Source of the DNA: Leucoraja erinacea
Lineage: Eukaryota
Assembly (NCBI RefSeq): GCF_028641065.1
Contig: NC_073391.1
Span: forward strand, 5,642,001-5,706,000
Direction of reading: 5' to 3'
Length of the DNA stretch: 64,000 bases
Shown here piece by piece: positions 125-62,375 of the stretch. Position numbers and translations under genes: made by a program. The notes beneath the pieces were generated by a model. That model did no database searches. It worked only from the letters and a program-made list of their open reading frames with translations, and had not been told where the DNA came from. Each line of letters starts with the position of its first letter. Position 1 is the first letter of the stretch.

Positions 125-620
125 GTTGGAATGAACTGCAGATGCTGGTTCGCTCTGAAGATAGACACAAAATGCTGGAGTAAGTCAGCGGGACAGGCCG
201 CATCTCTGGAGAGAAGGAATGGGAGGCGTTTCAGGTCGAGACTCTTCTTCCGAATGTTTAGTCTTTCACTGACTTCTGGTCTCTTCTACCCATATCCCTA
301 CTTCTGGCTTTACATTTCACTCCTTGTCTTATTTTGGTATCTGACATCCCTTTGGCTCCTTTTCATCTCCAGCCAATATCACTTACTGCATCTATCTGCC
401 AGTCACACCGCCCCAACCTTTACCTGCATATCACTTGTCAGGCTTTGCTCCGCCCTTGTTCTCTGTTCCAGCTTTCTCCCCACTTTCCATCAGTCTGAAG
501 AAGGGTCCTGACATAAAATGTTGTCTGTCCATTCCCTCCACAGATGCTGTCTGACCCACTGAGTTCTTCCAGCCATCTATTTTTTGCTTAAGATTCCAGC
601 ATCTGCAGTTTCTTATGTCT
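125..620. mobile_element. Penelope-like element (PLE) terminal-repeat pair in inverted orientation
   Basis: Minus-strand pLTR at ~125-250 (GGAATGAACTGCAGATGCTGG...GACACAAAATGCTGGAG) and plus-strand 3' UTR/pLTR ending CAGTCTGAAGAAGGG...CAGCATCTGCAGTT at ~490-620. Confidence 0.75.
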
Positions 621-696
621 TGAGACATCAGATGGCAAGTTTTAGATGAATAAGTGCCAGCTTCCATATCTTTAGAGTTTAGAGTTATGTTAGTTT

Positions 697-1462
697 GGCG
701 GCGCCTAACGGCAGCGGCTCGACTACAGTCGTCTGTCTTTTAAAACATTTTTAGTCTTGTTAAATGTGGCTTGAATCTAGTTTTTAATATTTTTTAACTG
801 TGTATATGTGGGGGGTGGAGGGGGGGGGATGCTGGGGAAACCGTTAATCTTTTCCCTGCACAGGGACCCGACTTTTTCCCTGTCGGGTCTCCGATGTCGT
901 TGGGCCTAACATCGAGGAGCCGGCGGTGGCCTCCGGCCGGAAATAACCTGAGGGCTCCAGTCGCGGAGCCTGCGGACATGACATCACGGTGCTGGCTGAC
1001 TTCGGTGCGGGAAGAGCTGTGGTGGCGTGCGGCTGCGACATGACTTCGGAGAATTGGAGGCTCCGGCCGCAGGCCCGGTGGACAGGAACATCGGGAGCTC
1101 CAGGTCACTGGTGGGAGACCGCTTTTTGGAGCTCCTCCCGCTGGAATCATGGGGTTTAAAGGACTCGGAGCGGGGCCTAACATCGCCCTGCTTAAACGGC
1201 CACAGGACTTACCATCGCCCGCCGGGGGCTTTAACATCGGAGCCCTAGTTCGCCTTGACGCTGCAGTTGGACTGCTGGACCGCGAGAGAAGAATAAAGGG
1301 AAGAGATAAGACTTTGCTTTCTATCACAGTGAGGAGGTGTTGGAGATTCACTGTGATGGACGTTTATGTAAACTGTGTAAAGTTTGGGTTTTTTTGTAAT
1401 GTAAAAACTGTAGAAAATGCTATTTCGTTCAAACCAAGTTGTTTGAATGACAATAAAAGGCA
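697..1462 (+). mobile_element. GC-rich non-coding retroposon with Rex1-type 3' end (subfamily A); its (ATTCT)n tail lies at 3331-3362 beyond the DIRS insertion
   Basis: Shares GGGGAAAC..CCCTGCAC..GACCCGAC..GTCGGGTCTC and CCATCGCC.GCCGGGGGCTTT modules with the copies at 17503-18395 and 43781-44651; ends in stem-loop TTCAAAC-CAAGTT-GTTTGAA followed by TGACAATAAA. Confidence 0.65.
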
Positions 1463-3330
1463 TTTTACTTCGGAGTCACGTGAGTGACTACGTGAAGAAA
1501 CTCGTTCAGCTGCACGTGCATCATTACGTCAGGCGCATTGGTGCAGGCGGCCGGTTGGAGCAGCAGGAGCTCCTCCAGCCCGGTAAGTTTAAACTTCAGG
1601 TAAGCTTGTTTTTCTTACCTGTTTTATTCCTTGCAGGAACCTCTTGTTCCAGAGGCTTCCTGCCGGAGGATTTGCGAGGCCCGACGAGGGAACCAGCTAT
1701 GGGCTGTGGGGAAACCCCGGTTCTTGCCGCAGGTGCGGATAGCTGGGTTGTCGGGTGTCGCGAAGTCGGTCGCTGACGGGTGGTCAGTGACTTCTAGGCG
1801 CTCCGGGTGCCGGGAGGGTTTCCCTCCAATAGGCACATAAACGCTGGGGTTCCCGGGGAGGGGACCTCCAGTAGTCGGGAGCGTTTTTCCTCCGATATAA
1901 ATATAGTTGCCGGGTGTCGGGAGGGTTTTCCCCAATATACATATAGAGGCTGTGGTTCCCAGGTAGGGGAATCCAGTAGTTATGCGGCTTTCAGACCGCA
2001 GGGGTCCCCAGGAACGGGGTTAAATGGACCGGAACAGTCAGCCCTGGTGCTGGTAGGGTTTTTTCCCTCCGGTAATATATATATATGGGTGCTGGGATTC
2101 CCGGGGGAGGGGAAATCCACCAGCAATGCGGTGCCCAGACCACAGAGGTCCCCAAGATATGGGGTAAACTGACCCAAGCGGTCAGTCCTGGTGCCGGGAG
2201 GGTTCCCTTCCGGTAAAATGGAAAATGTGGAGATTGACCAGGATGGAGCCCTATTGAGAGGAGGCTCAAGCTTGATACACCCTAACATCAGGAGTTGTGT
2301 CAGTGCGGGACTATGGGAAAGTCTGTGCCAGCAGCAGGGCTGCTTAAAGGGGATGCTGAGTCTATGGCAGTGTTGGGCAGATGGGAGAGCCCGTGCCAGC
2401 AGCGCCTTGTAGCAGGGCTGCATAATGGGAATGCCGAGTCTATGGCAGTGCTGGCCTATTGCTCTAGGCCAGGCCAGCAGTGCCTTGTAATAGGGCTGCT
2501 TAAATGTATGGCAGCAGCACCTGTAGAAGGGCTGCATGATGTCTCCCTCATGGAGGAGGTGAGCTTACCAGGGCAATTTCTGACCCTGAAGGGTGGGCCT
2601 GTTGGAGAGGCTGCACCAGCAGCGCCTTGTAGTAGGGCTGCTTAATGTCTCCCTTATGGAAGAGGAGAACATGCCGGGTCAGTGTAAATTGGTGCCAAGG
2701 TTGAGGGTATAGCGTGGAGCATACCTCAAGGGATGAAGGGCACATGTCAGAGGTACGATTCCTGGCAGCAAGGTTGCCATCCCAACACAATGCAGTGAAC
2801 ACCACTATCAGGGGACGTTAGAGCCACCCGCCGAATCTTCTATTCAGGTAAGACCTATTCCACAGGCATAGACTTGTTTCTCACGGCATGAAATCACAGA
2901 GCTTTGACTAATCACAGAGACTAATCAAAAATCCATCTATCTCTGCCTTAAAAATATCCACTGACTTGGTCTCAACAGCCTTCCATGGCAAATAATTCTA
3001 CTTTTTAGAATAGAATTGAATAGAATAGAATAGAATTGTAAGATTAAACGAGAACTTACCAGTTTGAAGTTTGGTCTTTATTTTATGAGGAGTTACGATG
3101 AGGGATTACGTGCCCTCCGCTCCCAGCCCTCATTAAGATCATCTGGTGGTTCAAGTCTTCTTTCATTTTACTATCATACTTCAGTCACTATTATTATCTG
3201 TGATTTCACACCGCTGCTTTGAAGATTGACGCACGTGCGGCTGAACGGGCTTCTTCACGTAATCCCTCACCGTAACTCCTCATAAAATAAAGATCAAACT
3301 TCAAACTGGTAAGTTCTCGTTTAATCTTAC
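1463..3330 (+). mobile_element. DIRS1-like tyrosine-recombinase retrotransposon, internally deleted
   Basis: Left end TTACTTCGGAGTCACGTGAGTGACTACGTGAAG; ~1486-1525 is an inverted match to ~3222-3264; internal complementary region 3039-3112 pairs with the right end 3256-3330; ATT at both junctions; tandem sub-repeats at 1800-2650; no intact ORF. Confidence 0.7.
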
Positions 3331-3448
3331 AATTCTATTCTATTCTATTCAATTCTATTCTAAAAAGTGGAATTCTTTGCCATGGAAGGCTGTTGAGACC
3401 AAGTCAGTGGATATTTTTAAGGCGGGGATAGATAGATTTTTGATTAGT
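2920..3448. repeat. Long inverted repeat, ~193 bp arms (2920-3112 / 3256-3448)
   Basis: Reverse-complement match read directly, including the (ATTCT)n tract and CR1 flank. Confidence 0.9.
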
Positions 3449-3808: not shown

Positions 3809-3854
3809 CCATTCTATTTCTATCACTTATCATTTATGACCAAAAGAATGAAAA

Positions 3855-4245: not shown

Positions 4246-4761
4246 TTACCTCTCATTGAGAGTGGATGGTAATAGGTTGGATTGAATTTGTGCACCTGTT
4301 TGTGGATGGGGCATACTTGCAATTCCATGGTATTATGTGGATGCTGGTGCTGTAACAGTATGGATCAGTTAATCAGTACCCCAGGACAATAGTTTGTATG
4401 TTCCAGCATCACTGCTGTATCCAGTGCTCTCAGATATTTATTGATATCAGGAGAAATGAATTCAAATGAAGTGTTTACCTCTTGAAGCCTACTGATTCAT
4501 GTTGTGCAAGGACACTCTGAAGCTTCACCTGGTCAAATGCTGCCTTGATACCAAGAGATATGATGCGATATGGGATAGAATATTCCTGGCAAAACCCAGC
4601 TGGATAGTGTGCAGGTTATCAATGATCATGAGAAAATAAAGAATCAAAAGCAGTGATGGGCCTTTAGACCCCTCGTTCAATGAGATTATGGCTGATCTTG
4701 TATCTTAGCACTTCCTTCATGCATTTATCCCTTAACGTGCAAACATCCATCAACTGTCTGA

Positions 4762-4887
4762 ATAGGAAGTAGGTGCTGGTTTAAACCGAAGATAGACACA
4801 AAATCTGGAGTAACTCAGCGGTACAGGCAGCATCTCTGGAGAGAAGGAATGGGTGATGTTTCGGGTCAAGACCCTTCTTCAGACTGA
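4762..4887 (-). mobile_element. PLE terminal repeat
   Basis: Matches the recurrent pLTR consensus. Confidence 0.8.
4851..4886 (-). ncRNA. Minimal type I hammerhead ribozyme motif (near-consensus copy)
   Basis: Minus strand reads CAGT-CTGAAGA-A-GGGT-CTTG-ACCC-GAAA-CA-TC-ACCC. Confidence 0.6.
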
Positions 4888-4989
4888 TTGCGTGTGTGAA
4901 TGACACATTTCTGTCTTTCTTCCATCAGCGGTCTCATATTTAGGCAGTGACCAGACTTCCAGTTGGATTTCAAACAGTTCAAATACTCA

Positions 4990-5570: not shown

Positions 5571-5576
5571 CACACA

Positions 5577-5627
<51 letters not shown>
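5571..5627. repeat. (CA)n microsatellite
   Basis: Direct reading. Confidence 0.95.
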
Positions 5628-5629
<2 letters not shown>

Positions 5630-5739
5630 CCACGGAGGGGAGGCTGGCTGGACTATGGTGCCATCCTCACCTTGGTGCCATTTTTGTTATGTTGTGTCGT
5701 GGACTTTCTGTGTTTGTGCTTTTTTTTTTTTTTAAATTC

Positions 5740-5988
5740 NNNNNNNNNNNNNNNNNNNNNNNNNNNNNNNNNNNNNNNNNNNNNNNNNNNNNNNNNNNNN
5801 NNNNNNNNNNNNNNNNNNNNNNNNNNNNNNNNNNNNNNNNNNNNNNNNNNNNNNNNNNNNNNNNNNNNNNNNNNNNNNNNNNNNNNNNNNNNNNNNNNNN
5901 NNNNNNNNNNNNNNNNNNNNNNNNNNNNNNNNNNNNNNNNNNNNNNNNNNNNNNNNNNNNNNNNNNNNNNNNNNNNNNNNNNNNNNNN
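5740..5988. other. Assembly gap (N run)
   Basis: Run of N characters. Confidence 1.
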
Positions 5989-8029: not shown

Positions 8030-8422
8030 CAAAAAGCTTGGGCAGTTTACAACTCAGTATAATATTGATTTCTTTAACTCTAAGTACCCCTTGCATCCCC
8101 TCTCTCTCTGTCCCTCCCCCACCCAAGTCACTGGACTAGCTTCAGTCATCTTGTTAAGTCTCTTTGTCCGGTTCCACCTAGCCCACAGCTAACAATGACC
8201 TGTTTCCTTGATCATTGTTACTTTTTTGCATATCATTCATGCATCTATATCTCTCTATATCACCGTCTATATCTCTCGTTTCTGTTTCCTCTTTCAGTCT
8301 GAAGAAAGGTCTCGACCCAAAACATCACCTATTCCTTTTCTCCAGAGTTGCTGTCTGACCCGCTGAGTTACTCCAGCTTCTTGTGTCTATCTTCAGTTTC
8401 AACCAGCATCTGCTGTTCCTAC
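8030..8422 (+). mobile_element. PLE 3' end (GIY-YIG tail remnant, 3' UTR, hammerhead-bearing pLTR)
   Basis: AATATTGATTTCTTTAAC remnant, then CAGTCTGAAGAAAGGTCTCGACCCAAAACATCACC. Confidence 0.75.
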
Positions 8423-9221: not shown

Positions 9222-9961
9222 CTAGACCAAGGGCAGACCCGTTGGGTCTGCTCCCCCAACGCAGCCATTCCCTATCCGTAGCCCCCACGGGAGACGTGGT
9301 CCTCCAACTCAAGCGGCTCAGGAATGAGCAGTGCGACTGGTTTTAAATGGCATCTTTGAATGCGAGATGCGGGCGCCAGCGGAGGCAACAGGGGGGGGGG
9401 GTGGGGGGGGGGGGGGGGGGGGGGGTGGGTTGGGGGGGGGGGGGGGGGGGGGGGGGGAGAAGGATTTAATGAAAAATGTGGACATAAACATAACAAAACC
9501 TAATGAGGAGTGGATAGTTGGAATGAAAAATGAAATGTCTACACAAATGGCTGCTTCTATGGGTGAGAAGCCAGTTTATTTTTGAAATATTGGGGGGTGG
9601 GGGGGGGGGGGGGGGAGGGATTTGATTAAAAAAGTGTACTTAAACACGCCAAAATGTAATGAGGAGCAGATACGTAGAAAGAAAAGTGAAATCTCTACCG
9701 AAATGGAAAAGATCTCGGCGATTGTACGTCTGGATTTGGCGTGGCAAGGAATCAAAGGAAGAAATGCAGCCGGCAGCCGTACATGTAAATTGATCCATTC
9801 CGATTGGACATCTGCGAGCATCGGCCATTCCGATTGGACATCTGCGAGCATTGGGCATTGTGACATCACACGATGGAACAAATCAAAAGGCAGAAAGGCA
9901 GCCGGACGGCAGCCGGTCGGATGGCACGAGAGTTTTATATAATAATAGATAGATAGATAGA
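9222..9961 (-). mobile_element. Non-autonomous Helitron
   Basis: Minus strand: A|TCTATC... 5' end; 3' hairpin GCAGACCC-AAC-GGGTCTGC then CCTTGGTCTAG|T; no TSD; internal 30-bp tandem repeat at ~9795-9855. Confidence 0.85.
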
Positions 9962-19778: not shown

Positions 19779-19941
19779 GAAGATAGACACTAAATGCTGG
19801 AGTAACTAACCGGGACAGGCGGGAGAAGGAATGGGTGACGTTTCGGAAGGTGACCCTTCTTCAGACTGAGAGTTCTCACCCATTCCTTCTCTCCAGAGAT
19901 GCTGGCCGTCCCGCTGAGTTACTCCAGCATTTTGTGTCTAT
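19779..19941. mobile_element. PLE-derived hairpin mini-element
   Basis: Two pLTR arms in inverted orientation. Confidence 0.75.
19833..19868 (-). ncRNA. Minimal hammerhead ribozyme motif (core intact, stem II altered)
   Basis: Minus strand reads CAGT-CTGAAGA-AGGGTCACCTTCC-GAAA-CG-TC-ACCC. Confidence 0.5.
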
Positions 19942-20902: not shown

Positions 20903-21470
20903 GTGTAGAAAGGAAATGCAGATACTGGTTTACACCAAAGATAGACACAATATTCTGGAGTAACTCAATGGGTCAGGCAGCATTCCTGGAGAAAAGTAAT
21001 AGGTGCCGTTTTGGGTCAAGACCCTTCTTCAGACTGAGAGTCAGGGGAGAGGGAAACTAGAGATATGTAGAGGTACATAGAACAAATGAATGAAAGGTAT
21101 GCAAAAGGACAAATCAAAGCCATGGGGAAATGCTGGATTTGCAGCATCCTTTTCTCCCCTTCCCCTCCCCTCATCCCCTTCAACCTATTAACATTCACTG
21201 ACTTTGCACCTCTTCGATCACTATCTCCTCATCTCACATTTTTTGTCTTTTCATCTCCGGCCTTTGTCCAACCATGTGCCTATCAATGTCCCCACGCACC
21301 TGTATCCACCTATCACTTGCCAGGCTTTGTCCTGCCCCCACCTCTCATCCAACTTCCAGCTCCACCACAATCAGAGTCCCAACCCAAAACGTCATGTATC
21401 CTGACCCGCTGAGTTACTCCAGCACTTGTCTTTTTTTTTTTGCAAACGGGCTTCTGCAGTTCCTTGTGTC
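20903..21470. mobile_element. PLE 3' ends in inverted arrangement
   Basis: Minus-strand pLTR+UTR at 20903-21120 and plus-strand UTR+pLTR at ~21150-21470. Confidence 0.7.
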
Positions 21471-22068: not shown

Positions 22069-22162
22069 GTGAAGAAGGGTCTTGACCAGAAACATCGCCT
22101 CTTCATTCTCTCCTTAGATGCTGCCTCACCCGCTGAGTTTCTCCAGCATTTTTTGTCTACAT
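22069..22162 (+). mobile_element. 94-bp pLTR unit beginning at the hammerhead core
   Basis: Flanked by the 8-bp duplication CCAATATG (22061-22068 / 22163-22170). Confidence 0.7.
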
Positions 22163-22194
22163 CCAATATGTCCCATCTACACTAGTCCCACTTG

Positions 22195-27283: not shown

Positions 27284-27550
27284 AAGATAGACACAAAAAG
27301 CTGGAGTAACTCAGCAGATCAGACAGCATCTCTGGAGGAATAGGTGACGTTTTGGGTCGAGACCCTTCTTCAGACATGAGAGTTAAGGGAAAGGGAAACA
27401 AGAGATATAGATGGTGATGTAGGGAGATACAGAAGAAATGAATGAAAGATATGCATGAAAGTAACGATGATCAAGGAAACAGGCCATTGTTAGATGTGGC
27501 CTGGGTGAAAACGAGTTACAGACAACGAGACTCAACAAGACCACATCAAA
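27284..27550 (-). mobile_element. PLE 3' UTR and pLTR
   Basis: Consensus match; hammerhead motif at ~27343-27375. Confidence 0.8.
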
Positions 27551-31371: not shown

Positions 31372-31604
31372 CTTCTTTGCGATGGTAGACACAAAATGCT
31401 GGAGTAACTCAGCGAGACAGGCAGCATCTATGGAGAGAATGAATGGATGACGTTTCGGGTCCCTTCTTCAGAGTGGTTCCTTCTAACCCATTCCTTCCTC
31501 CATAGATGCTGCCTCACCCGCTGAGTTACTCCAGCATTTTGTGTCTACCTCCGATTTTATCCGGCATCTGCAGTTCTTTCTCACATCTTCTTTGCGATGG
31601 TAGA
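31372..31604. mobile_element. PLE-derived hairpin mini-element with 18-bp TSD
   Basis: CTTCTTTGCGATGGTAGA at 31372-31389 and 31587-31604 flanks inverted pLTR arms. Confidence 0.85.
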
Positions 31605-34614: not shown

Positions 34615-35049
34615 ATATAGTTCCAGTGTGTGGCTGAAAAGAGTCTGAAGCAGGGTCTCGACCCAAAATGTCACACATTCCTTCTCTCCAGATATGCTGC
34701 CTGTGCTGTGCTGCTTTTTGTGTCTATCTGCGGCTGAATGAAGTTTGGTTTATTTTGCATCGAACAGTATAGTCATCAACAAATGAAATCAGAAGACTTT
34801 GGCCACGTTTTGTAATGATGCATTGTTCAATATCTTTTCTTTGCATTTGATTCCAAAATGCGATATGAACATTGGGTCTTGTTTCAATATTCAGCATCAT
34901 CATCCCTCACATTTAAAGCACTATTAAATATAGCAAGATAATAGATCCAAAATGTTTGAAAGTATACTGCCATGACAAATGCACTATTAATATTTTAGTG
35001 TTTTGTAATTATGAGCTGCATATTTTAATGACTTGATTTCACACACTGA

Positions 35050-41789: not shown

Positions 41790-42121
41790 AAAAAACAAAG
41801 TGCTGGAGTAACTCAACGGGTCAGGCAACATAATTGTAATAAAAAGGATCTGCAGATGCTGGTTTATGCCAACACAGTGACAAAAAGCTGGAGTAACTCA
41901 ACGGGTCAGGCAGCATCTCCAGAGACATGGATAGGTGACGTTTTGGGTCAGCACCATTCTTCAGATTAATTGTAGGAGGGGTGAGAAAGGTGGAAGAGAG
42001 GTAGGGGCATTCAAGGTGTGGAAAGTGATAGCTGGCTACAGGTGAGGGGGACGGGGGTGGGGGAGGTGGGTGGGAGGGCGGGGGGGTGGAGGGATCGGGG
42101 GGGTGGAGGGATCGCGGAGGT

Positions 42122-42159
<38 letters not shown>

Positions 42160-42280
42160 CGGTAGGCTGGGGGGGGGGGGGGGGGGGGGTGTGATACATG
42201 GATAAGCTAAGGCCAGTGATGAAAAGACATAAAGAGTGAGATGAGGAGATAAGGACAGAAGGGGTGTGAAACATGAAAAG
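41790..42280 (-). mobile_element. PLE 3' UTR and tandem pLTR
   Basis: pLTR segment repeated (41795-41828, 41885-41965); G-rich tract. Confidence 0.7.
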
Positions 42281-45339: not shown

Positions 45340-46800
45340 TTCTGGGACTGATCTCCTCACCATTGAAGGGATCATCAGCAAGTGCTGCCTCCAAAAAGGA
45401 AGGTAATATCATGAAAGACACAAAATGCTGGAGTATCTCAGCGGGAAATTCATCATCTCTGGAGAGAAGGAATGGGTAACGTTTCGGATTGAGACCCTTC
45501 TTCAGACTGAGAGTCAGGGGAGGGGGGGATACAGAGATAAGGAAGTGTAAGGTGTGAGAACAAGACATCAAAGGGGGTGGAAATCAAAGAAAATTTAGAA
45601 TAGATCATTGTTAGTTAAATGTAATCGGGGACAGTCAGACTGGTGGGAGAACTGGGAACGGGGAGGGATGGAGACAGAGGGAAAGCAAGGGTTACTTGAG
45701 GTTAGAGAAGTAAATGTTCATACCGCTGGGGTGTAAGCTGCCCAATGAAATATGAGGTGCTGTTCCTTCAATTTGCGCTGGGTCTCACTCTGACAATGGA
45801 GGAGGCTCAGGACAGAAAGGTCAGATTGGGAATGGGAGGGGAAGTTAAAGTGTTTAGCAACCGGGAGATCAGGTAGGTTTAGGCAGACTGAGCTAAACTA
45901 CTCCTGGTTGGTAGTGTCCATTGTCAGAGTGAGGCCCAGCGCAAACAATGATCTATTCTGCATTTTCCTTGATCTCCATCCACTTTGATGTTTCGTTCTC
46001 ACCCCTTACACATCCTTATCTCTGTATAGTCATATAGAGTCAGAGAGTGATAAAGTGTGGAAACAGGCCCTTCGGCCCAAGTTGCCCACACCTGCCAACA
46101 TGCCCCAGCTACATTGGTCCCATCTGCCTGCACTTGGTCCATATCCCTCCAAACTTGTACTATCCATGTACCTCGTTGCATTTTGTTGTCTCTGTACTGT
46201 ACACTGACAATGACAATTAAAAATTATAAATTGAATCTGTACCTGTCTAACTGTTTCTTAAATGTTGGGCTAGTCCTAGCCTCAGCTACCTCCTCTGGCA
46301 GCTTGTTCCAAACACCCACCGCCCTTTACCTTCCTCCCCCCTGACTCTCAGCACTTTGTGTTGATCTTCGGTTTAAACCGGCATCTGTAGTTCCTTCCTA
46401 CAAATATCATGAAAGACAAACACCACCCTGGCCACGCTCTCATCTCGCTGCTACCAGAATGGGTGACGTTTCGGATTGAGACCCTTCTTCATAACGAAAG
46501 AGGAACTTGTGAACCATTAACATGGCTTGAAGTACAGCCTCGGCCCACCTCTTGAACCACCAGCATATCCATAACCACAACCCGACCTCAGCTACAATCT
46601 ACTATGGACATTGTTTATGTTGCACTACATATTTTGGTTTACACTTTCACCGTCTGGTTATCTACTACAATTGATCATTTATAATATTATTGATTATTGT
46701 ATTTGTTGTGCTGTTGCGTTAATGTGACTGTTGATCTGCAGAAAGTGAGAATACCATTATTCCATACCCAGTGTACACGACTAATAAAAACACACTTGAC
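45340..46800 (+). mobile_element. Old Rex1/Babar 3' fragment interrupted by a PLE
   Basis: GTDLLTIEGI..CLQK..NIMKD joins HHPGHALISLLP across the insertion. Confidence 0.6.
45421..46402. mobile_element. PLE insertion with inverted arms and 16-bp TSD; CR1 tail nested at 46028-46330
   Basis: AATATCATGAAAGACA at 45405-45420 and 46403-46418; GIY-YIG C-terminus on the minus strand at 45690-45890. Confidence 0.8.
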
Positions 46801-48704: not shown

Positions 48705-48970
48705 GGATGACTAGTTTCATGGTCGTCTTGTTGAGTCTCATTGTCTGTAACCCGTTTTCCCCTAGCCCACACCTAACAATGGCCTGTTTCCTTTATCATC
48801 GTTACATTTTTTGCATATTTTTAATTTATTTGTTCTATACAATCTATATATCCATCTATATCTCTCATTTCCTATTCCGCTGACTCAGTCTGAAGAAGGG
48901 TCTCGACCCGAAATGTTACCTATTCCTTCTCTCCAGAGATGCTGCTAGAGTTACTCCAGCATTTTGTGCC
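48705..48970 (+). mobile_element. PLE 3' UTR and pLTR
   Basis: Consensus match. Confidence 0.8.
48886..48920 (+). ncRNA. Minimal hammerhead ribozyme motif (helix III and cleavage site mutated)
   Basis: CAGT-CTGAAGA-A-GGGT-CTCG-ACCC-GAAA-TG-TT-ACC. Confidence 0.5.
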
Positions 48971-50019
48971 TAATTGTCGGATTCTACTGATTTGCAACTA
49001 AAATATTATCTGTGTTTGATGTAATGGCCCTTCGACCCGCCATTCAGAGTAAATACGTTTTTAAGCCCATGGCTTTAAAAACAATCGTTTATTACTTTTT
49101 TTTAAATCCTCATAATCTTCATTGTTTTGCTGCTGGCTGGAAAATCCAGCCAATCAATTTAATATTCTGATTTGCACATGTAAATATACATTCTGTTGCT
49201 CAGGAATGTTTCCCCAATGGGAGCATTTAAACCACCCTAGAGAAAAGGAGCATATATGATGCTTTATTTACATTAACTTAAACGGAACTGAACTCCAGCG
49301 ATGACATGATCCAAATTGAGCAGAATAAGCAGCAGGACATCTCTCTTCAGCAACTTAAATTCATCCCCAAACATTAGCAAATGTCTAACTCTGTTGACCA
49401 AACTGTAGTTGCTGCTTAGAGAAAGAATGGACTATTGCTCACAACATCAGCCAGATAATCATTACAGCTTATACACAGAAGCTGGAGTCATTCAGCGGGA
49501 CAGCCAGCATCTTTGGTAGAAGAAATGAGTGATGTTTTGGGTCGAGACCCTTCTTCAGACGAAGACTAGTTGTCTGGTGGGATAAGATGCATGGTCTAGA
49601 TGCATCTCCTGACCTTGTCCCTTCAGGTCATTATACTTTCTACAGCTGCTGTATCTAAGTCTTGATGGTTGACTGCTGGGTCTGGCTATTACAATGTTCT
49701 GCTTCCACTGGAACTCCTGCAAATCTGGAAAGACTTGCATCTCCATGGTCAATGTTAGAAGTTACATCAGAGGCTGGTTATCTCAAATTGTTGAATTTAT
49801 TATTGAGTTCCATGTGCTGCAACATGCCTAGGTAGAACATGAGGTGCCATATTTATATCTGACAGTGGCTTCATTTGAACAGAGTAAGGAGCCAAATATA
49901 GACATCATGAGCACCAAATGCAGTACAGTAAATTGGAAGAAGTACAAATGAATTGCTGCTGCACCTGGAAACAGTGTGTCTGGTTGATGTAATTATGTAA
50001 AAGGAAAGGTGTTATACCA

Positions 50020-50605
50020 GGTGCTATACAGGTGCGGGCTCCTATATATCAGTGAGACCAAACACAGACTGGGCGATCTTTCTCTGAATGCCCAGTCCGC
50101 CTTGGCCTAAGTATCTCCCGGTTGTCAGACATTTTAACTCCCCTTCCCATTTCCACACTGACCTTCCTGTCCTGGGCCTCCTCCCCTCCCAGAGTGAGGC
50201 CACGTGCAAATTGGAGGAACAACATCTCATATATTACTTGGGCAGCTTACACCCCAGCGGTAGGAATATTGAATTCTCTAATTTCAAATAACCCTTGCAT
50301 TCCCTCTATCCCTCCCTCCCCATCGTAGTTGTCCTGGTGGTTCCACTGTCACATCCTTGTAACCCTTCATAGTCACCTCTACCACAGCCAACAATGGGCC
50401 ATTGTGGGCTTTACCATTCCTTGATGATCTGTTAACATCGCTGCTTTGTTCCGGCCTTTTCTCACCTCCAGTTCCTGCCCCTCTACTTTTGGTCTGAAGA
50501 AGGACCTAACCCGAAATGTCACCCATTCGTCATCTCCAGAGATGCTGCCTAACCCACTGAGTTATACCCACTTCGGTATAAACTGGCATCTTTCCTTTCC
50601 TTGTG
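50020..50605 (+). mobile_element. PLE 3' end with GIY-YIG endonuclease remnant
   Basis: CGLLYISETKHRLGD...PVVRHFNSPSH..KLEEQHLI..LGSLHPSGRNIEFSNF, then UTR and hammerhead at ~50491-50524. Confidence 0.85.
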
Positions 50606-51265: not shown

Positions 51266-51538
51266 CTTCATTGGACTTTAGGGAGGAACTGCAGATGCTG
51301 GTTTAAACCAAAGATAGACACCCAATGCCGGAGTAACTCAGTGGGTCGGACAGCATTTCTGCAGAAAATGAATAGGTGACATTTCGGGTCCAGTCCCTTC
51401 TTCAGACTTCAGACATTCTTCAGACTCGAGTCTGAAGACGGCTCTCGACCCAAAACGTCACCTAATCCTTTTCTCCAGAGATGCTATTTGACCCACTGAG
51501 TTACTCCAGCTTTTTGTGTCTATCTTCATTGGACTTTA
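51266..51538. mobile_element. PLE-derived hairpin mini-element with 15-bp TSD
   Basis: CTTCATTGGACTTTA at 51266-51280 and 51524-51538; hammerhead motif on both strands. Confidence 0.85.
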
Positions 51539-51924
51539 TCTTGCACTAAATGTTGTACTCTTTATCCTCTAAGCCAAGCGCATGATAAGCAGAATTGCTA
51601 TGTCACTAGCAGAAAATGCTAGGGATACTCAACAGATCAGGCAGTATCTGAAGAGAGTTGAACAGAGTTAACCATCAAGGTCATTGACTCATTGGCTGAA
51701 CCTTAAAATGTGCCATTTACTGCTTCCCGTTTTGCAGGCACTGAACCATGAATTGACCCAAACTGCCAACCTTTGCTCAGCATGTTGCAATGATGATCCT
51801 AGAGCTCCAAGTAGACGGGTTGCTAGATTTCCAGCCCTCATTGCAGGTCTTCCATAATAGCAGGAATTCACAAGGTGCTGAATGATTCCATCAGCTGCCC
51901 ACAAACTGCATACTATGTCTATCT

Positions 51925-52130
51925 GTGTAGGAAGCAATTGCTGATTTTGTTTTACACCTAAGATGGACACAAATTGCTGTAGTAACTCAGCGGGGCAGGC
52001 AGCATCTCTGAAGAGGAATGCATGACGTTCGGGTCGAGACCTTCAGAGTAAAAGGGTCTCGACCCAAAGCATCACCCATTCCCTCACTCCTGCCTGCCAC
52101 CTGAGTTACTCCAGCATTTTGTGTCTACCT
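51925..52130. mobile_element. PLE-derived hairpin mini-element (diverged)
   Basis: Inverted pLTR arms. Confidence 0.7.
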
Positions 52131-52992
52131 GTTGATTTGCAGATGTCATCAGGCCAACCCTGCTGCAAACCAACCTGAGAGGAATTATTATTCCAACATA
52201 TTGTGTCTTATCTATTAAATGATCATATCCCTTCAAGTCCAACTTAAAACCTTCAAGGACAGATGGTGCATTGAATTTCCTTCATCTCCTTGAGTGAGCT
52301 CCAAATCAGAGCCATTTCAGTCCAGGATCTGACTCTACCTTGGCACGAGGAATGGAAAACTGTGCAGAAAGTTTCACAAAGTTACATAATACTTGAAGAC
52401 TATTAAAAAAAAGTGGACTAACAGTGCAATATTCTGGGGAATTGCACTTTAAATGAGTAACTAAAATATCAAAAAATATTTTGTCAATAACACAAGTATG
52501 AACATGTAGAAGGCAATTTTGCACCACAAAATTAAATGTTAAAATATTGATTTGGAAACTAGATTCCAAATCAATACTTTAAAAATGTTATTTTATTTTT
52601 GGAACAATATCAAATATCTTTTCAAATTTTCTTCCTTGGAAATATATATGATACAAAATAATTCAATTTTAGTATTCTACAACCCAGGAGAAGTATCATG
52701 CAGCGCAAAGCATGGAGTATAAATCATATTTTCTTACAGGTTTTCATGACCTGGGAGTGTGACTTTCACTAGATTCCTGATGTGAATAAGAAAGTCACAG
52801 TAAAAGTAATTCTACGCTAAGTTTCACGGTATATGAAAAAATTATATGTGTATTAAATATGTATGATCATATCTCTGCAGAAACATGTCAATTACAATAG
52901 CTGGACTTTGCTTATGTCTAGTTCTCATGGACAAATCATTGGATGAATTTGATGCACATGAAGAAACAGATTTAAAATATGATTGTTTTAAG

Positions 52993-53378
52993 GTGTAGGA
53001 AGGAACTGCTGATGCTGGTTGACACTGAAGATAGACACCTGAGACAGTTCGGATAGGCAACGTCTCTGGAGAGAAGGAATGGGTAACGTTTTGGGTTGAG
53101 ACCCTTCTTCAGACTGAGAGTCAGGGGAGAGGGAGTTTAGGGATATGGAAGGGTAAGATGTGAAAACTTACCCTTCCATGCCTCTAAATTGTTTAAAGAT
53201 ACCGGACAGAGGCTTTATAGTGACCTTGTAGTAGGAAGGAACTGCAGATGCTGGTTTACACCGAGGATAGACACAAAATGCTGGAATAACTCGACTGGAC
53301 AGGCAGCCTCTCTGGTAAGAAGGAATGGGTGATGTTTTGGGACTCAAACCCAAAATGTCACCCATTCCTTCTATCCAG
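52993..53378 (-). mobile_element. Two PLE terminal repeats
   Basis: pLTR consensus starting at ~52993 and ~53231. Confidence 0.75.
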
Positions 53379-53828
53379 TGTCAATATAGTGTTGTATATC
53401 TAGATTTCATTACATACATTATTTATGTTTAACTTTGCATATCTAGAAAGTGGAATAAGCATCTGATGAGATGTTTATTTTACCAGATAGATCACAAGCA
53501 TGCACTAGAAAAAGGTTAAGGACCCAACATGGCGAGCCCTTTTTTTTTGCTGCATTAATGAGAAGGAACTCATAACTCCATAATTTCCACAGATCCAAAG
53601 CCATAACAGAGATCACCCATGGCAGAGAACTCCTCAGCTTGGAAAAGTAGGTTCTCATTTGATCACGAGTTGGATGGGAAACATAGAAGTATGCACATGG
53701 AACCATTGATTATCAGCACACAGAATTGTCCTCTATGTAAATATATTTTTGGGCCAACAATTGGTCTGGTCTGACATTTATCCATTCCATTCAAGCGGAA
53801 AAGCCCATAAGGAATTCTATGAACTATT

Positions 53829-58055: not shown

Positions 58056-58119
58056 CCCTCTAGAAATAATGCATGGGTTGTGGTCATTGTTCATGGTAAT
58101 TTTGGTGGTTTTCTATCTA

Positions 58120-58195: not shown

Positions 58196-58200
58196 TTTAC

Positions 58201-58358: not shown

Positions 58359-59859
58359 AAAGTCTTGACTACACAATGATAGCAAGATATTTGTTCCTTT
58401 CCTCAGTTGCTCAGTAGCTGTTCGGAAGCTGATCTCTGGCAAGCCTCAGTTGGCATTGATCCAAGTGACTGGTATTTTAGCGCCAATATATCAGAGACTA
58501 TGTCTGTGAAGTGAATGTGCAACACCTTGGCTGACTTACCAACTTTCTTAACTGTGCCCCAAATCACTTTCAGACATTGGATTTTAATTCTAAGGAATTT
58601 GAGGACAAACGGTTGTTCATTTTTGAAATCAATTATCATCTGAAGATCCTCTGCGGTATGATGTTAGCACTTTGCCTCTTTGCTGAAATTATAAAATCCT
58701 TCTGACAGCTTGTCAGGAAGCTCTGCTTGAAGTTTGCATCTTTGAAGTATCTGGTCGTCAGTGATATGCAGCAGTTTTTATGTCATTGAAACGCTTGAAT
58801 ATGACAAACCCCACCATAGCTTAGAATAGAAGTCAACTTGCATTTCCCCAGTGTAAGACTGAGACTCTAAAATGGTAAAGAATGAATCTCATTTATTGAT
58901 TTAGAATCTGGAAAGAAATGTTACTTATTCAGCGATTGTAGATGATTACCATCATGCATTTTAGAAAACCTAAAACCATGCAAATGGTTTTGCACAATTT
59001 CTGGTGCATGGAATTCATTACAAGAAGTTGAGAATGAAATGTGAGATTAAAGAGCCATTTCTCAGGGATTGTAGTGCGGTAAGCCTCGAATATAGCAGAC
59101 TGGTGACTTCAATGAGCGATTCACTTACCCAATGCAAAGTGTAGAAAAATGCTAATGTGTTTATTGGCAAAGCATCAACTCGCACTTTTAACTCGTTTAT
59201 TGGAGTTATTGATCATGAATGACAATTTGACAAATAGGATGCACATGAAATGCCATGGATCACATTTGCAGCATTTTTTGTTAGCTAAGCAGAGGAAATG
59301 ATAATATTTCATGCCACAAATATAATTATCTCCAGCTCCTTCAAGTCAAGAGATTATGACTTTGAAATGATTGTGTGACTGACGAACTGTTGGAGAGCCC
59401 CCTAGTGCATTCATCAAAATTGATTGAAAGGAAACGTGCTGGATTTTAATGTTTCGGAGAGCATCGGTTTGAGAGACTCTGGGAAGGGATGACTCCCATG
59501 AAGTTGAAGACATGTCGGGAAGCTGAGCCCAGCGTGCAGACTTCCACAGTTAACGGCAGTGGATTAGATTGCCTTCATTTAACCCTCTTGGGAGAGGTGC
59601 GATAACCAATTTCAAAGGGATAATCAGTCAATCACAAAGACATGATCCTGGTGTTTGCAGCTTAGAGATGGGTTCATGGATGTCTGAACTCACCTGGAAA
59701 CTCACCTGGAAAGCGTGTGAAAACGGCATCAATTTAGAAGGCAATACAAGGCAACTCTGGACAGCTGTACTAATTATCTGCACTGTAGAGCTCTGATCAA
59801 TCTAATCCACACCAGCACTCCTAATGTTGCATTCTTTTGGATGGAGCTCTGATCAATCA

Positions 59860-60483
59860 GTGCATCGAATGTATCTGCTGGTCCAGATGTGGACTATACC
59901 TCGCCGAGACCAAGCGCAGGCTGGCTGATCATTTTGCTGAACACCTCCACTCAGTCCGCCTAAACCTACCTGATTTCACGGTTGCTAAACACTTTAACTC
60001 TCCCTTCCATACCTCGACCTTACTGCCTGGGCCTCCCCCATTGTCAGAGTGAGGCCCAACGCAAATTGGAGGAACAGCTCCTCATATTTCGCTTGGGCAT
60101 CTTACACCCCAGCGGTACGAATATTGACTTCTCTAACTTGCTTTCCCTCTCGCTCCATCCCACCCCCTTCCTAATCCTCCGACCAGTCTGACTGTCCCTC
60201 TGATTACATTTTATTTCTGTAACCTTTGTTGTCGCTATCTCCTTACTAACAATGTCGCAATACTACAATTTCCCTGAATGCATCTCCTTTGATGTCTCAT
60301 TTTCACACCATACCCATCCATATCTCTGTGTCTCCCTCTCCCCTGACTCTCCGTCTGAAGAAAGGTCTTGACGCGAAACATCACCCATTCTTTCTATCCA
60401 GAGATGCTGCCTGGCCCGCTGAGCTATTCCAGCACTTTGTGACTATCTTCAGCGTAAACCAGCATCTGCAGTTCCTTCCTACA
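59860..60483 (+). mobile_element. PLE 3' end with GIY-YIG remnant
   Basis: CICWSRCGLYLAETKRRLADHFAEHL..VAKHFNS..KLEEQLLIFRLG; hammerhead at ~60352-60386. Confidence 0.85.
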
Positions 60484-61147
60484 CATCACATTTTCTTTGT
60501 TGCCGCTGCAATTTGTCAACGAGCAAATGTAAAGAAGACAAATTGAAGAGTGCCTGGAGTTCCCTGTAACCTTTGTCCCAGATTCTCTGCTGTTCATCTC
60601 ACCTTCCCTTTTTGCTCTTGCTCACGTGCTGTATGAGATGCCTGGTGTAAACCTACCGATCGTTCTTTCTGACATGAAGATTCTCGACCCGAAACGTCAC
60701 CTATGCCTTCTCTCCAGAGATGCTGCTTGTCCCGCTGAGTTACTCCAGCATTTTGTGTCTATCTTCAGCATCTGCAGTTCTTTCCCACACTACGTATTTG
60801 GAGATATGGTGTAATGTAGGGTAACAGATAGTCTTGTGTGAAATTAAATACATTAATTTAAGGAACACTCAGCCTGTGTGAACCAACCTGATCTCCCGGT
60901 TGCTGGACACTTTAATTCTCCTTCCCATTCCAACACAGACCTTTCTGTCCTCGGTCTTCTCCATTGTCAGAGTGAGGCTGAACGCAAATTGGAGGAACAG
61001 CATCTCATAATTTGCTTGGGCAGCTTAGAGCCCAGTGGTATGAATATTGATTTTTCTCACTTCAGGTAGCCCCGGCATTCCCTCTCTCTCAATTGCTCCC
61101 CCACCCAATTTGCACTAGCTTCTCATTTTCACCCTACAAACAGCTTA

Positions 61148-61416
61148 TGGGCCGGTCCCACTTAGGCTATTTTTAGGCGACTGCCGGCCCCCTTCGACTG
61201 TCAAGCTACGCTCATTGGTGTCAAAGCCACAGTTGCCGACTATCTCCGAAAATGTTTCAACATGTTGAAAATCTAGCAGCGACGAGAAAGATGCTACGAC
61301 TCTTTGGGCGACTGAGGAGACGACTCACGACCATACAGGCGACACCCCGGCAACCACGTGGCAACAGCCTAGTCGCCTGTAGTCGCCTAAAAATTTGCTT
61401 AAGTGGAACAGGCCCA
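61148..61416. mobile_element. PIF/Harbinger MITE with TTA TSD
   Basis: CAGC-TTA|TGGGCC...GGCCCA|TTA-CAATGG; removal restores the PLE UTR seen at 8187-8205. Confidence 0.9.
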
Positions 61417-61524
61417 TTACAATGGCCTGTTTCCTTTATCATTACTTTTTTTGCATATCTTTCATTCATTGTTCCTTATCTCTCCACATCACCGTCTATA
61501 TCTCTCGTTTCCCTTATCTCCAAC

Positions 61525-61560
61525 CAGTCTGAAGAAGGGTCTCGACCCAAAACGTCACCC
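61525..61560 (+). ncRNA. Minimal hammerhead ribozyme motif (G12>A change)
   Basis: CAGT-CTGAAGA-A-GGGT-CTCG-ACCC-AAAA-CG-TC-ACCC. Confidence 0.5.
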
Positions 61561-62375
61561 ATTCCTTCTCTCCAGAAATACTGCCTATCCCACTGAGTTA
61601 CTCCAGCATTTTGTGTCTAAGGTCATAATATTGAGTCGCTGCTAGCGAAACACGTTGAACTGAATTGTGAAATGACTCAATGGCCATTTCTGGTTGTCCA
61701 TCTTTCCCAGGTGTTCTGCGATCTTTGCTCCTGTGACTGAGGGGATGTATCAAATACAGTAGAAAGATGCGCATTTGTTGTGGATAAGTATAAGCCCGAG
61801 GCATAGGCAAAATTAAGCTGAGTGCTATTGTCAATTAGATGGGAATAGATGATGGATAGACAGAAATTATTGGGTGTACCTGCAAGCCAAAATGGAGGGA
61901 TGAGAGAGCTGCCGGGCTGGATTTAAGAGTATCAATTTGTGTGTTGGGATTAGAGGTCAAATTAGAGGTAAAACCCAGTATGAACCTGAGATGACCACAC
62001 CTACCTTAAATCCGATCTCAGGACAAGAATTTTAAATTTATTTTTGCTTCCCAAACTGTTTAAGCGTGTCAGGCTAGAGTTGAATAGCCAAGCTCAAAAT
62101 AAAGTGCTGCATCTGGTGCATTAATTTATAATGAGCCAGCCTGGCACACTTTGACTGGAACTGCCAGTTTAAATGGATCCCATTAAAGTGAGCTTGTGTT
62201 TCACCTCAGGTTTGAGGTCGATTGTGTTGATTGTGCCATTTCTGCTGTGTTGAGTCCATTAAAGTTCTCTCAGTATTGAATCAACAAAGTAGACCGCTGG
62301 GCTCCTATTGCAAATATCGTAGGAAACCTCCTGCCACATCTTAATTATTTTACTGTGGATTGTTTAATGTTTAAA

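Follow-up and report, generated by a model that had tools for sequence, protein, structure and literature searches.

The window, by which we mean the whole 64-kb stretch of DNA analyzed, contains 24-25 copies of a hammerhead ribozyme motif on both strands, where chance would produce none, in line with the more than 20 copies claimed by the first-pass annotation of this DNA. These copies are very probably genomic fossils of the hammerhead of the min-HHR type found in the pseudo-LTRs of Penelope-like elements (PLEs) with a C-terminal GIY-YIG endonuclease; self-cleavage by the motif is our inference. The family is real but an ordinary, very abundant example of a motif class first described in 2014; the class, the dimer model and massive copy numbers in vertebrate genomes are already published.

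Motif copies and their decay

The motif has the consensus CTGAAGA-A-GGGT-CTCG-ACCC-GAAA-CG-TC-ACC. A 28-mer of this consensus found 13 sites with at most 3 mismatches (0.00 expected from 100 shuffles), and a fuzzy search of the window found 23 sites. All 19 places listed in the first-pass annotation were recovered: 18 by the fuzzy search, and the one near 491 on the plus strand by direct inspection of the sequence as well as by nhmmer and a covariance model. Five sites were additional to that list (31446-, 41934-, 52021-, 52044+ and 60666+, the sign giving the strand). Two checks proposed at that stage had opposite outcomes. A strict min-HHR descriptor matched two copies in the window (45478-45505 and 48890-48917), compared to 0.0 matches in 200 dinucleotide shuffles, while the Rfam hammerhead covariance models failed to detect the motif even at E-values up to 10.

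The motif is embedded in a 3′ module of about 190 nt, of which an nhmmer profile found 37 fragments in the window (4216 bases, 6.6% of the non-N sequence), 24 of them including the hammerhead region. Tandem arrays of the unit were absent from the 64 kb. An assembly gap at 5740-5988, with a (CA)n tract, a poly-T tract and unrelated sequence on its flanks, overlaps no copy, the nearest family member (4741-4904) being over 830 nt away; ORFs listed across it are artefacts of N. The copies are:

222..254, minus strand: decayed motif (U4 to G, U16.1 to C); fuzzy search, direct inspection
495..522, plus strand: decayed motif (stem II 3′ strand, G12 to A); direct inspection, covariance model
4855..4882, minus strand: motif with 16.2 G to A, and therefore without the helix III palindrome; 28-mer search, core table, covariance model
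8299..8326, plus strand: decayed motif (G12 to A, 16.2 G to A, G10.1 to A); covariance model
19837..19864, minus strand: motif with intact core and disrupted stem II, in the loop of foldback 19779-19954
21005..21032, minus strand: decayed motif (G12 to A, U16.1 to G); covariance model
22069..22159, plus strand: 91-nt mini-copy starting at motif position C3/U4, with an 8-bp direct repeat, CCAATATG, at 22061-22068 and 22163-22170
27346..27373, minus strand: motif, sole lesion G12 to A; 28-mer search, core table, covariance model
31380..31586, no strand given: hairpin-shaped (head-to-head) copy with one hammerhead motif and an 18-bp target-site duplication at 31372 and 31587
31449-31471, minus strand: motif of that hairpin-shaped copy, stem II deleted
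34645..34672, plus strand: decayed motif (A9 to C, G12 to A) within short copy 34641-34738
41937..41964, minus strand: decayed motif (G10.1 to U, G12 to A); fuzzy search, covariance model
45478..45505, minus strand: formally intact motif (C3..H17), stem II GGGU/AUCC, GAAACGUU; strict descriptor, covariance model 55.4 bits
46465..46492, minus strand: motif with C3 to A in a copy truncated on its 3′ side; covariance model
48890..48917, plus strand: formally intact motif, helix III AUGU, H17 = U; strict descriptor, covariance model 62.5 bits, E 2.7e-14
49531..49558, minus strand: decayed motif (G12 to A, 16.2 G to A); covariance model
50494..50520, plus strand: motif with intact core, stem II 2/4, 206 nt downstream of endonuclease remnant 50088-50288
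51378..51405, minus strand: motif with intact core, stem II 3/4, in one arm of foldback 51261-51530, an inverted repeat with 98-nt arms; covariance model
51432..51459, plus strand: motif with G12 to A and the extra nucleotide A to C, in the second arm of the same foldback; covariance model
51918..52134: foldback carrying two motifs, both badly decayed (52021-52048 minus, 52044-52076 plus)
53085..53112, minus strand: motif with G12 to A, H17 = U; 28-mer search, core table, covariance model
53226..53380, no strand given: foldback with its junction within the 3′ half of the motif
60355..60382, plus strand: decayed motif (stem II 2/4, 16.2 G to A), 215 nt downstream of endonuclease remnant 59825-60188
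60669..60698, plus strand: motif with 5′ core box lost and 3′ half (GAAACGUC) intact; covariance model
61529..61556, plus strand: motif, sole lesion G12 to A (CpG decay), 463 nt downstream of endonuclease remnant 60857-61066

The anatomy described from the sequence was upheld: helix III consists only of A-C-G-U, stem I is short, here 2 bp (U2.1-A1.1 and G2.2-C1.2, followed by an A/C mismatch), and a single extra A stands between A9 and G10.1. Published PLE min-HHRs (Cervera & De la Pena 2014, PMC4209133) are recognized by the core boxes, one extra nucleotide following A9, pairing of G10.1 with C11.1, a palindrome at 15.2/16.2 and a GUC cleavage triplet. All of these features, including all four hallmarks outside the descriptor, are present in the motif, the family majority carrying CUGANGA and GAAA, the extra A, G10.1-C11.1, CG at 15.2/16.2 and GUC. 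With CpG positions set aside, no part of the repeat is better conserved than the hammerhead columns, which score 0.926; the parts downstream reach 0.886 and 0.875, and the part upstream 0.705.

Formally, just 2 of the 24 copies are intact, and nearly all copies in the window are dead. The copies decay neutrally, chiefly at three CpGs: CpG transitions make up most departures from the consensus. G12 has become A in 12 of the 24 copies, the G at 16.2 has become A in six, and the C at 15.2 has become T in five. The CpG-type decay noted in the first-pass annotation was correct. The motif lies about 115 nt ahead of the 3′ end of the insertions, which are 5′-truncated, sometimes head-to-head and sometimes flanked by target-site duplications (18, 10 and 8 bp). 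This style matches that of PLE insertions, for which 5′ truncation, adjacent inverted copies and target-site duplications have been described (PMC8557442).

Endonuclease remnants and distant Penelope-like loci

The longer copies carry a decayed GIY-YIG endonuclease C-terminus 206-463 nt upstream of the motif on the same strand:

45721..45897, minus strand: endonuclease C-terminus remnant, 216 nt upstream of motif 45478-45505
50088..50288, plus strand: endonuclease C-terminus remnant
59825..60188, plus strand: remains of the C-terminal part of a PLE GIY-YIG endonuclease ORF, decayed and with frameshifts, from the YIGETKRRL..EHL block through ..NIDFSN
60857..61066, plus strand: endonuclease C-terminus remnant, 77% identical to the C-terminus of protein P0001, which carries RVT_1 plus GIY-YIG

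The remnant at 59825..60188 is 64% identical to residues 409-452 of protein P0024, overlapping that protein's Pfam GIY-YIG match, and positions 59825-60049 align to the YIGETKRRL..EHLRS block. A profile of the remnants matched 558 proteins, the best of which have RVT_1 and GIY-YIG immediately N-terminal to the match, confirming that the GIY-YIG remnants reported upstream of the longer copies are real; the aligned relatives show a PLE endonuclease block with a Cys-rich linker. Because RVT_1 and GIY-YIG are combined in them, the intact relatives are PLEs. We found no PLE-type reverse transcriptase in the 64-kb window, where the reverse transcriptase fragments are those of jockey/CR1-like LINEs.

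For comparison, we gathered 29 metagenomic loci encoding relatives of the endonuclease, fetched through the endonuclease itself. A covariance model (R1) had a sense-strand match downstream of the endonuclease match in 20 of the 29, and in 16 of these 20 the motif architecture is located 55-290 nt beyond the point where the ORF is projected to end. Helices I and II show compensatory changes in these distant loci. In alignment A6, which was fitted to the model and whose covariation is essentially that of two lineages, 86% of cells are paired, compared to 19-45% with partners slid; pair 2.2-1.2 is GC 19 times, CG 18 times, AU 3 times and UA twice, pair 10.4-11.4 is UA 21 times and CG 19 times, and G10.1-C11.1 is GC in 39 of 49 scored cells. 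Stem I was never a requirement in the locus scan, so its covariation is unbiased. One locus (L001:1074-1121) has a U3..A8 core variant, a type of core covariation also reported in PMC4209133. The endonuclease remnants, the distant PLE loci and the published hallmarks together support the original assignment as a Penelope-type minimal type I hammerhead.

Cleavage and alternative explanations

By analogy with the published class (PMC4209133, PMC6765202, PMC11167929), a single motif in the RNA of an active source element would be unable to close helix III. Two motifs, on neighboring copies of one transcript or on two RNAs, would instead pair mutually through A15.1-C-G-U16.1 into a 4-bp helix III, upon which each core would cleave after GUC. 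The reaction would probably be slow and aided by the element's own protein or by chaperones, and its likely role would be to process PLE transcripts that are multimeric or read-through, while insertion may not need cleavage at all. The window has no tandem arrays that would favor dimers. The modeled dimer with helix III has a free energy of -7.5 to -8.4 kcal/mol, compared to -20.3 for the best dimer. Another check suggested at the outset, a search for RNA ends (starts or stops) after GUC, found none in three raw-read runs over a 4.6-kb stretch with 8 copies. For the window family, we can only infer the self-cleaving system that the first reading proposed.

One alternative is that the conserved block serves the pseudo-LTR as an RNA element without catalysis, perhaps as a binding site for a protein or the RT or as a different hairpin, retains no more than a hammerhead-like sequence and spreads independently of self-cleavage, the ribozyme being vestigial or "parasitic" on the PLE. 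Minimum-energy folds lack the hammerhead and favor a hairpin in which CUGAAGAAGG pairs with the downstream CCUUCUCUCCAGAG, sequestering the 5′ core box. The 2-bp stem I of the window family and the lack of RNA ends at the cut site point the same way, as do the Anolis element PAc, whose hammerhead mutants insert normally in vitro and whose reads neither start nor end at the site (PMC11167929), and the Naiad PLEs, which thrive without hammerheads (PMC8557442). However, the metagenomic PLE lineage keeps helices I and II through compensatory changes and does not keep the competing hairpin, the positions that do not vary coincide exactly with those needed for catalysis, the U3..A8 co-variant included, and PLE hammerheads of the min-HHR type do cleave in vitro, weakly or aided by protein (PMC4209133, PMC11167929). 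We consider this explanation unlikely.

A still more improbable source of the copies is a non-LTR retrozyme, a non-autonomous element that exists as tandem repeats with hammerheads, yields small circular RNAs and is mobilized by PLE enzymes. One report traces such retrozymes to PLE pseudo-LTRs and places them in one chondrichthyan among those sampled (bioRxiv 10.64898/2026.07.22.740005), and the window does contain short ORF-less and hairpin copies with target-site duplications. Against this, the copies are dispersed rather than in tandem, 5′-truncated and often joined to endonuclease remnants; type I hammerheads of retrozymes have a canonical helix III loop and loop 1/loop 2 contacts, both of which the motif lacks; and the RNA reads contain no unit-specific back-splice-like joints, those found being cross-copy mappings. 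Finally, a repeat with CTGANGA and GAAA fortuitously at the right spacing is already effectively refuted: taken by themselves, the core boxes carry little information (10 loose matches in the window, 3.2 expected) and Rfam is silent on the motif, but the full descriptor never matched shuffled sequence, and unrelated PLE loci have this architecture again in the same position, with covariation.

Comparison with known systems

The copies share type I topology and the catalytic core with canonical type I hammerheads and metazoan non-LTR retrozymes (PMC7229834; Rfam Hammerhead_1). Those systems have a stem-loop on helix III, a helix I of 6 bp with tertiary contacts between loops, and a tandem genomic organization. 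The copies have none of these, and Rfam models do not score the motif. PAc (Poseidon, Anolis carolinensis) is likewise a vertebrate PLE hammerhead without a stable helix III and, like the window family, shows no RNA-seq ends at the cut site; its cleavage requires the element's protein and is dispensable for insertion in vitro (PMC11167929). The PAc ORF start overlaps stem II (PMC11167929). The window contains no full-length unit.

With the metazoan PLE min-HHRs (PMC4209133), the family shares the core boxes, the unpaired nucleotide between A9 and G10.1, the G10.1-C11.1 pair, a position in the pseudo-LTR after the RT-EN ORF, and very numerous, heterogeneous and mostly solitary copies, some of them close together on opposite strands. 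Both lack a helix III hairpin and have only the palindromic 15.2/16.2, so two motifs must pair. The host lineage of the window's genome is absent from the lineages named in that study. Helix II is 4 bp with a tetraloop, compared to 7-8 bp in the Schistosoma families, and helix I 2 bp, compared to 4-5 bp (PMC4209133). A 2-bp helix I is shared with the Drosophila virilis Penelope variant, which differs in that its helix II is bulged and its helix III contains a palindromic insertion of 2 nt; there the 3′ end of an intron adjoins helix I (PMC4209133), and in the window family a putative splice-acceptor-like tract (pyrimidine run, CTGAC, CAG) does so.

Unlike the window family, the metagenomic PLE loci (for instance L026:2730-2777, L006:1270-1317 and L009:1106-1152) have N7 = C, stem II GGGC/GCUC, a stem I of 3-4 bp (GCU/AGC) and, in place of the window family's hairpin, a competing pairing of CUGACG with CGUCAG. 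Their layout and spacing are identical to those of the window family (CUGANGA, A, 4-bp stem II, tetraloop, GAAA, CG, UC), and the motif occupies a like position, about 100 nt beyond the endonuclease ORF.

Copies of the motif and their conservation

The recurrent motif that the first-pass annotation had listed at 19 places, and had read as a minimal hammerhead ribozyme of Penelope-like elements (PLEs), belongs to an abundant repeat family. Its consensus is real: the 28-mer CTGAAGAAGGGTCTCGACCCGAAACGTC matches 13 sites in the window with at most three mismatches, against 0.00 expected by chance. A fuzzy search of both strands found 23 motif sites and recovered 18 of the 19 places; the nineteenth, near 491+, is visible directly in the sequence and was also recovered by nhmmer and by a covariance model. 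Five sites are additional to that list (31446-, 41934-, 52021-, 52044+ and 60666+). Overall the motif occurs about once per 2.7 kb.

Alignment of the copies places the motif within a module of about 190 nt that ends about 115 nt past the GTC. An nhmmer profile of this module found 37 fragments, covering 4216 bases (6.6% of the non-N window), and the hammerhead region is present in 24 of them. The repeat may be typical of cartilaginous fishes. To the left of an assembly gap at 5740-5988 lie a (CA)28 microsatellite and poly-T (5571-5739), and to its right purine-rich sequence (5989-6160). The bordering sequence is otherwise unrelated, and the gap affects no copy because over 830 nt separate it from the nearest family member (4741-4904); ORFs spanning the gap were discarded as artefacts.

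We measured conservation among the window copies as identity to the majority, with CpG columns excluded. The hammerhead columns score 0.926, the 70 nt that follow 0.886 and 0.875, the sequence beyond these on the 3' side 0.784 and the upstream sequence 0.705. The hammerhead is thus conserved better than any other block, and the sequence common to subfamilies has its 5' edge there. Loose read ends at 48885/48886 coincide with the same 5' edge of the sequence shared genome-wide. Decay is of the CpG type that had been described from the sequence. Most of the motif's lesions fall at its three CpGs, as changes in loop 2 and as the substitutions G12 to A (12 of 24 copies), 16.2 G to A (6 copies) and 15.2 C to T (5 copies). 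Two G-rich runs were also observed, at 9391-9457 (67 nt) and 42053-42189 (137 nt), the second adjoining a decayed copy (41842-41980).

Probable Penelope-like origin and mode of insertion

The longest copies, of about 500-750 nt, carry stop- and frameshift-broken pieces of one ORF tail upstream of the motif and on the same strand. The long copies are as follows:

59950-60447, long copy
45413-45892, minus strand, long copy
about 50054-50590, long copy
60866-61619, long copy

Four motif copies in the window lie 206-463 nt past these remnants, on the same strand. Pfam recognised nothing in the remnants themselves, and a feature search yielded no more than a weak hint of GIY-YIG. A profile built from the remnants matched 558 proteins among 1.84 billion, mostly at their C-termini, and the longer top matches have these domains:

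P0001: RVT_1 at 4-133 and GIY-YIG at 139-167, profile match at 170-235
P0024: RVT_1 and GIY-YIG at 402-435, profile match at 432-497
P0003, P0012, P0030 and P0106: GIY-YIG adjoining the profile match

The GIY-YIG scores of these relatives are 16.9-21.5 bits, just below the Pfam cutoff of 22.6. The window sequence at 59825-60049 is 64% identical to the YIGETKRRLADR..EHLRS block of P0024, and 60857-61066 is 77% identical to the C-terminus of P0001. Since a reverse transcriptase (RT) fused to a C-terminal GIY-YIG endonuclease (EN) is the signature of endonuclease-positive PLEs (PMC8557442), relatives with both RVT_1 and GIY-YIG bear out the earlier description of GIY-YIG remnants upstream of the motif.

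We found no PLE-type RT inside the 64-kb window. The large RT ORFs at 11500-13083 (-) and 62791-63324 (+) were rejected as candidates, because they match R2 and jockey-like LINE RTs most closely and neither is linked to a motif copy. They belong to a separate multi-copy LINE family, unrelated to the hammerhead repeat, which has further RVT_1 matches at 16768-17150 (+) and 43364-44836 (-) and includes one open frame of 527 aa; two tandem copies of a 203-bp unit, matching at 93%, lie where the LINE ORF region ends on its 3' side (11276-11679).

Two other sources of the repeat were considered. A non-LTR retrozyme would be expected to form head-to-tail tandem arrays of the hammerhead unit and to accumulate as small circular RNA; Tandem Repeats Finder reported no array containing the unit in the 64 kb. 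A tRNA-derived SINE origin can be dismissed, as the repeat holds no tRNA-like sequence. Elsewhere in the window, minisatellites with units of 47-48 bp occupy 29036-29268 and 29655-29964 (5 and 6.4 copies).

The insertion style fits that described for PLEs (PMC8557442): 28 of the 37 fragments are 5'-truncated, five head-to-head inverted pairs are present (19779-19954, 31380-31586, 51261-51530, 51918-52134 and 53226-53380), and target-site duplications flank the pairs at 31380-31586 (18 bp, the hairpin unit with its duplication spanning 31372-31604) and 51261-51530 (10 bp) as well as the 91-nt copy at 22069-22159 (8 bp). The motif is part of a PLE's 3' pseudo-LTR region and was spread through the genome by 5'-truncating, sometimes inverting, target-primed insertion, followed by decay.

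Both the 5' ends of fragments and the junctions of foldbacks are concentrated at the motif. Eleven of the 28 truncated fragments begin at model positions 34-52, the predicted cut falling after position 71. In the hairpin units 19779-19954 and 31380-31586, which carry the hammerhead in their loop, the shorter, inner arm begins no more than 2 nt from the predicted cut; the other three foldbacks have their junction elsewhere, in or before the motif. Two very short copies, at 22061-22170 (91 nt) and 34632-34738 (98 nt), start at or a few bases before the core position C3, end about 65 nt past the cut site and are flanked by direct repeats of 8 bp (CCAATATG) and 7 bp (GGCTGAA), respectively. The hammerheads of these mini-copies could not have produced their own 5' ends. 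Across 37 fragments the clustering is only suggestive as a record of cleavage, and we consider it improbable that the insertions themselves record hammerhead processing in vivo. If cDNA 5' ends or palindrome centres did peak sharply at A1.1 genome-wide, this would provide the first in vivo evidence for RNA cutting by a vertebrate PLE hammerhead ahead of reverse transcription, and would tie cleavage to the origin of hairpin-shaped and approximately 90-nt mini-elements.

A predicted 3' splice-site-like sequence (a pyrimidine run, CTGAC, then CAG) lies directly before helix I, and such a tract is found within about 30 nt upstream of the motif in each long copy, for example at 60325-60354, 45506-45540 (-) and 53113-53150 (-). 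The intron of Drosophila virilis Penelope terminates at the 5' edge of helix I (PMC4209133).

Hammerhead architecture and comparative support

Cervera and De la Peña, who defined the PLE minimal hammerhead (min-HHR), listed features that emerge beyond the search descriptor, with an extra nucleotide after A9, a conserved G10.1-C11.1 pair, a palindromic 15.2-16.2 and consensus families with compensatory changes as hallmarks (PMC4209133). The window family shows the first three of these. The majority sequence of the window family reads stem I (A)GU, CUGAAGA, an extra A, GGGU-CUCG-ACCC, GAAA, CG, U-C and then ACC, with both catalytic boxes, CUGAAGA and GAAA, at the right spacing. Core columns are 87-100% conserved except for G12, a CpG site (14 G, 14 A), and the unpaired nucleotide between A9 and G10.1 is A in 23 of 24 copies, as it is in the metagenomic relatives described below. 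The cleavage triplet is GUC in the majority, with H17 being C in 25 of 29 copies and U in 4. As had been noted from the sequence (a helix III reduced to the palindrome ACGU and a stem I of 2-3 bp), helix III lacks a hairpin and consists only of the self-complementary ACGU (majority A-CG-U), and stem I is 2 bp without a loop 1; a 2-bp stem I has a precedent in a D. virilis variant (PMC4209133).

A descriptor check that the first-pass annotation had suggested gave a positive result. Our strict descriptor asked for the core, zero or one extra nucleotide, a G-C-closed stem II of 4 bp or more, GAAA, complementarity between 15.2 and 16.2, U, H and a stem I of 2 bp or more. Two copies pass, at 45478-45505 (-) and 48890-48917 (+), whereas 200 dinucleotide-shuffled versions of the window, searched on both strands, gave 0.0 matches.

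We then used an alignment of intact EN relatives to fetch loci from metagenome contigs, obtaining 29 that encode an EN relative at 35-61% identity; a scan of viral contigs gave no relative. With a relaxed descriptor, which required stem II and 15.2/16.2 pairing and made stem I optional, sense-strand min-HHRs were found 111-158 nt past the EN match in four loci (L006, L009, L026 and L027) and further min-HHRs in three (L003, L011 and L016). A covariance model seeded with four window copies and four metagenomic min-HHRs recovered 51 matches. A sense-strand match lies downstream of the EN in 20 of the 29 loci, at a distance of 55-290 nt from the projected end of the ORF in 16 of them (206-463 nt in the window). 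The metagenomic family (GCU, CUGACGA, A, GGGC-UAAC-GCUC, GAAA, CG, UC, AGC) has the same layout and spacing as the window family and different helices.

In the eight-sequence seed, five of nine pairs show both-sided changes, and 91.7% of cells pair, compared with 78.6% in shuffled sequences and 12-43% with slid partners. Among the 51 matches, 86% of cells pair, against 19-45% with slid partners, and the composition varies at pairs 2.2-1.2 (GC 19, CG 18, AU 3, UA 2), 10.4-11.4 (UA 21, CG 19) and 2.1-1.1 (UA 36, CG 4, AU 2). The G10.1-C11.1 pair closing helix II is GC in all eight seed sequences and in 39 of 49 scored cells of the larger alignment (4 GU), where 15.2/16.2 also keeps its self-complementarity (CG 31, UG 9, UA 2). 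Helices I and II therefore appear to be kept by covariation between families, as read from essentially two lineages and, for the 51 matches, from an alignment fitted to the model. At L001:1074-1121, UUGAUAA replaces CUGANGA (U3..A8, a co-variant of the C3-G8 pair), a change also reported in PMC4209133; the variation seen at this locus and at L003:2785-2832 comprises the UUGAUAA core and a 4-bp helix I of different sequence. Near-identical architecture and compensatory changes in unrelated metagenomic PLEs lend comparative support to the view that the min-HHR is an RNA structure under selection rather than an artefact of the descriptor. We regard the identification of the motif as a PLE min-HHR as very probable.

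Putative self-cleavage and comparison with known hammerheads

Our indirect tests of self-cleavage, from predicted folds and read ends, were neutral to negative. Minimum-energy folds of four copies did not give the hammerhead and instead paired CUGAAGAAGG with the downstream CCUUCUCUCCAGAG, and the palindrome UCAG-U-CUGA at the 5' edge of the motif makes a competing dimer. A dimer with two stem IIs and a 4-bp helix III has a predicted energy of -7.5 to -8.4 kcal/mol versus -20.3 kcal/mol for the best dimer, placing the hammerhead fold 12-13 kcal/mol above it. The metagenomic family (L026:2730-2777, L006:1270-1317 and relatives) has a competing fold of its own: at minimum energy its 5' core CUGACG pairs with the complementary CGUCAG at the cleavage site in a stable inactive hairpin. 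The hairpin of the window family is absent from that lineage, whereas helices I and II persist, and this argues that the conserved structure is the hammerhead and not the hairpin.

For RNA evidence we used one oligo-dT run and two single-cell runs with the same species label, together with DNA contigs, over 48700-53300 (8 copies). Read depth is 10^2-10^3 in repeat bins and none in unique spacers, so the repeat reads come from other copies embedded in transcripts. RNA ends after GUC, which the first-pass annotation had suggested seeking, did not appear: there was no place in 48700-53300 where many molecules start or end in the oligo-dT and single-cell reads, a weak negative given the library types, a silent locus and reads from other, mostly dead copies. 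In the single-cell runs, reads at 48854-49007, 49470-49623 and 53012-53300 are 2-4 times commoner on the strand opposite to the element, while the strands are even over the repeat in the bulk oligo-dT run; the excess may stem from copies lying preferentially in one orientation within host transcripts. Summed word depth in DNA contigs is about 10^5 times greater in repeat bins than in spacers, a ratio that is not a copy number and that we used only as a sign of very high abundance.

In vitro, cleavage by PLE min-HHRs is poor even when they are dimers (PMC4209133; PMC6765202), and dimer cleavage of small PLE hammerheads was reported by Lunse, Weinberg and Breaker, as cited in PMC6765202. Anolis PAc likewise gave no RNA ends at the site, its hammerhead cleaves when its own protein is added, and the hammerhead is dispensable for insertion in vitro (PMC11167929). 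By analogy with the class, two motifs in the RNA of active source elements would pair ACGU with ACGU to form helix III, and each core would cut after GUC at a low intrinsic rate, probably aided by the RT-EN protein or by chaperones, trimming multimeric or read-through transcripts. Appreciable cleavage in vivo by intact copies is conceivable, though we lean slightly against it.

Everything essential about the window family is already published for other animals, including the motif class, its place in the pseudo-LTR, the dimer model, the massive numbers in which solitary copies populate vertebrate genomes, neighbours in inverted orientation and the lack of a clear function (PMC4209133; PMC6765202; PMC8557442; PMC11167929), and the link to retrozymes (bioRxiv 10.64898/2026.07.22.740005). 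PLE pseudo-LTRs have been stated to be always hammerhead-bearing, to work as dimers and to reach thousands of copies in fish, coelacanth, amphibian and reptile genomes. The motif density and the architecture shared with metagenomic PLEs are of modest specialist interest, with little novelty otherwise. The family is of value to annotation, as the motif marks a repeat filling about 7% of the window that Rfam-based pipelines will miss.

The search with hammerhead covariance models proposed in the first-pass annotation came back empty: an Rfam scan of the window found no hammerhead, either at gathering scores or with E relaxed to 10, and its sole low-scoring matches were miRNA-like and lay on head-to-head copies. 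Such silence is no surprise for a motif that lacks a loop on helix III, and it places the family outside the curated canonical hammerhead families. Whereas the canonical type I hammerhead (Rfam Hammerhead_1 and relatives) has a helix III stem-loop and a helix I of about 6 bp with contacts between loop 1 and loop 2, helix III of the window family has no loop, and stem I is 2 bp here and 3-4 bp in its relatives, with no loop 1.
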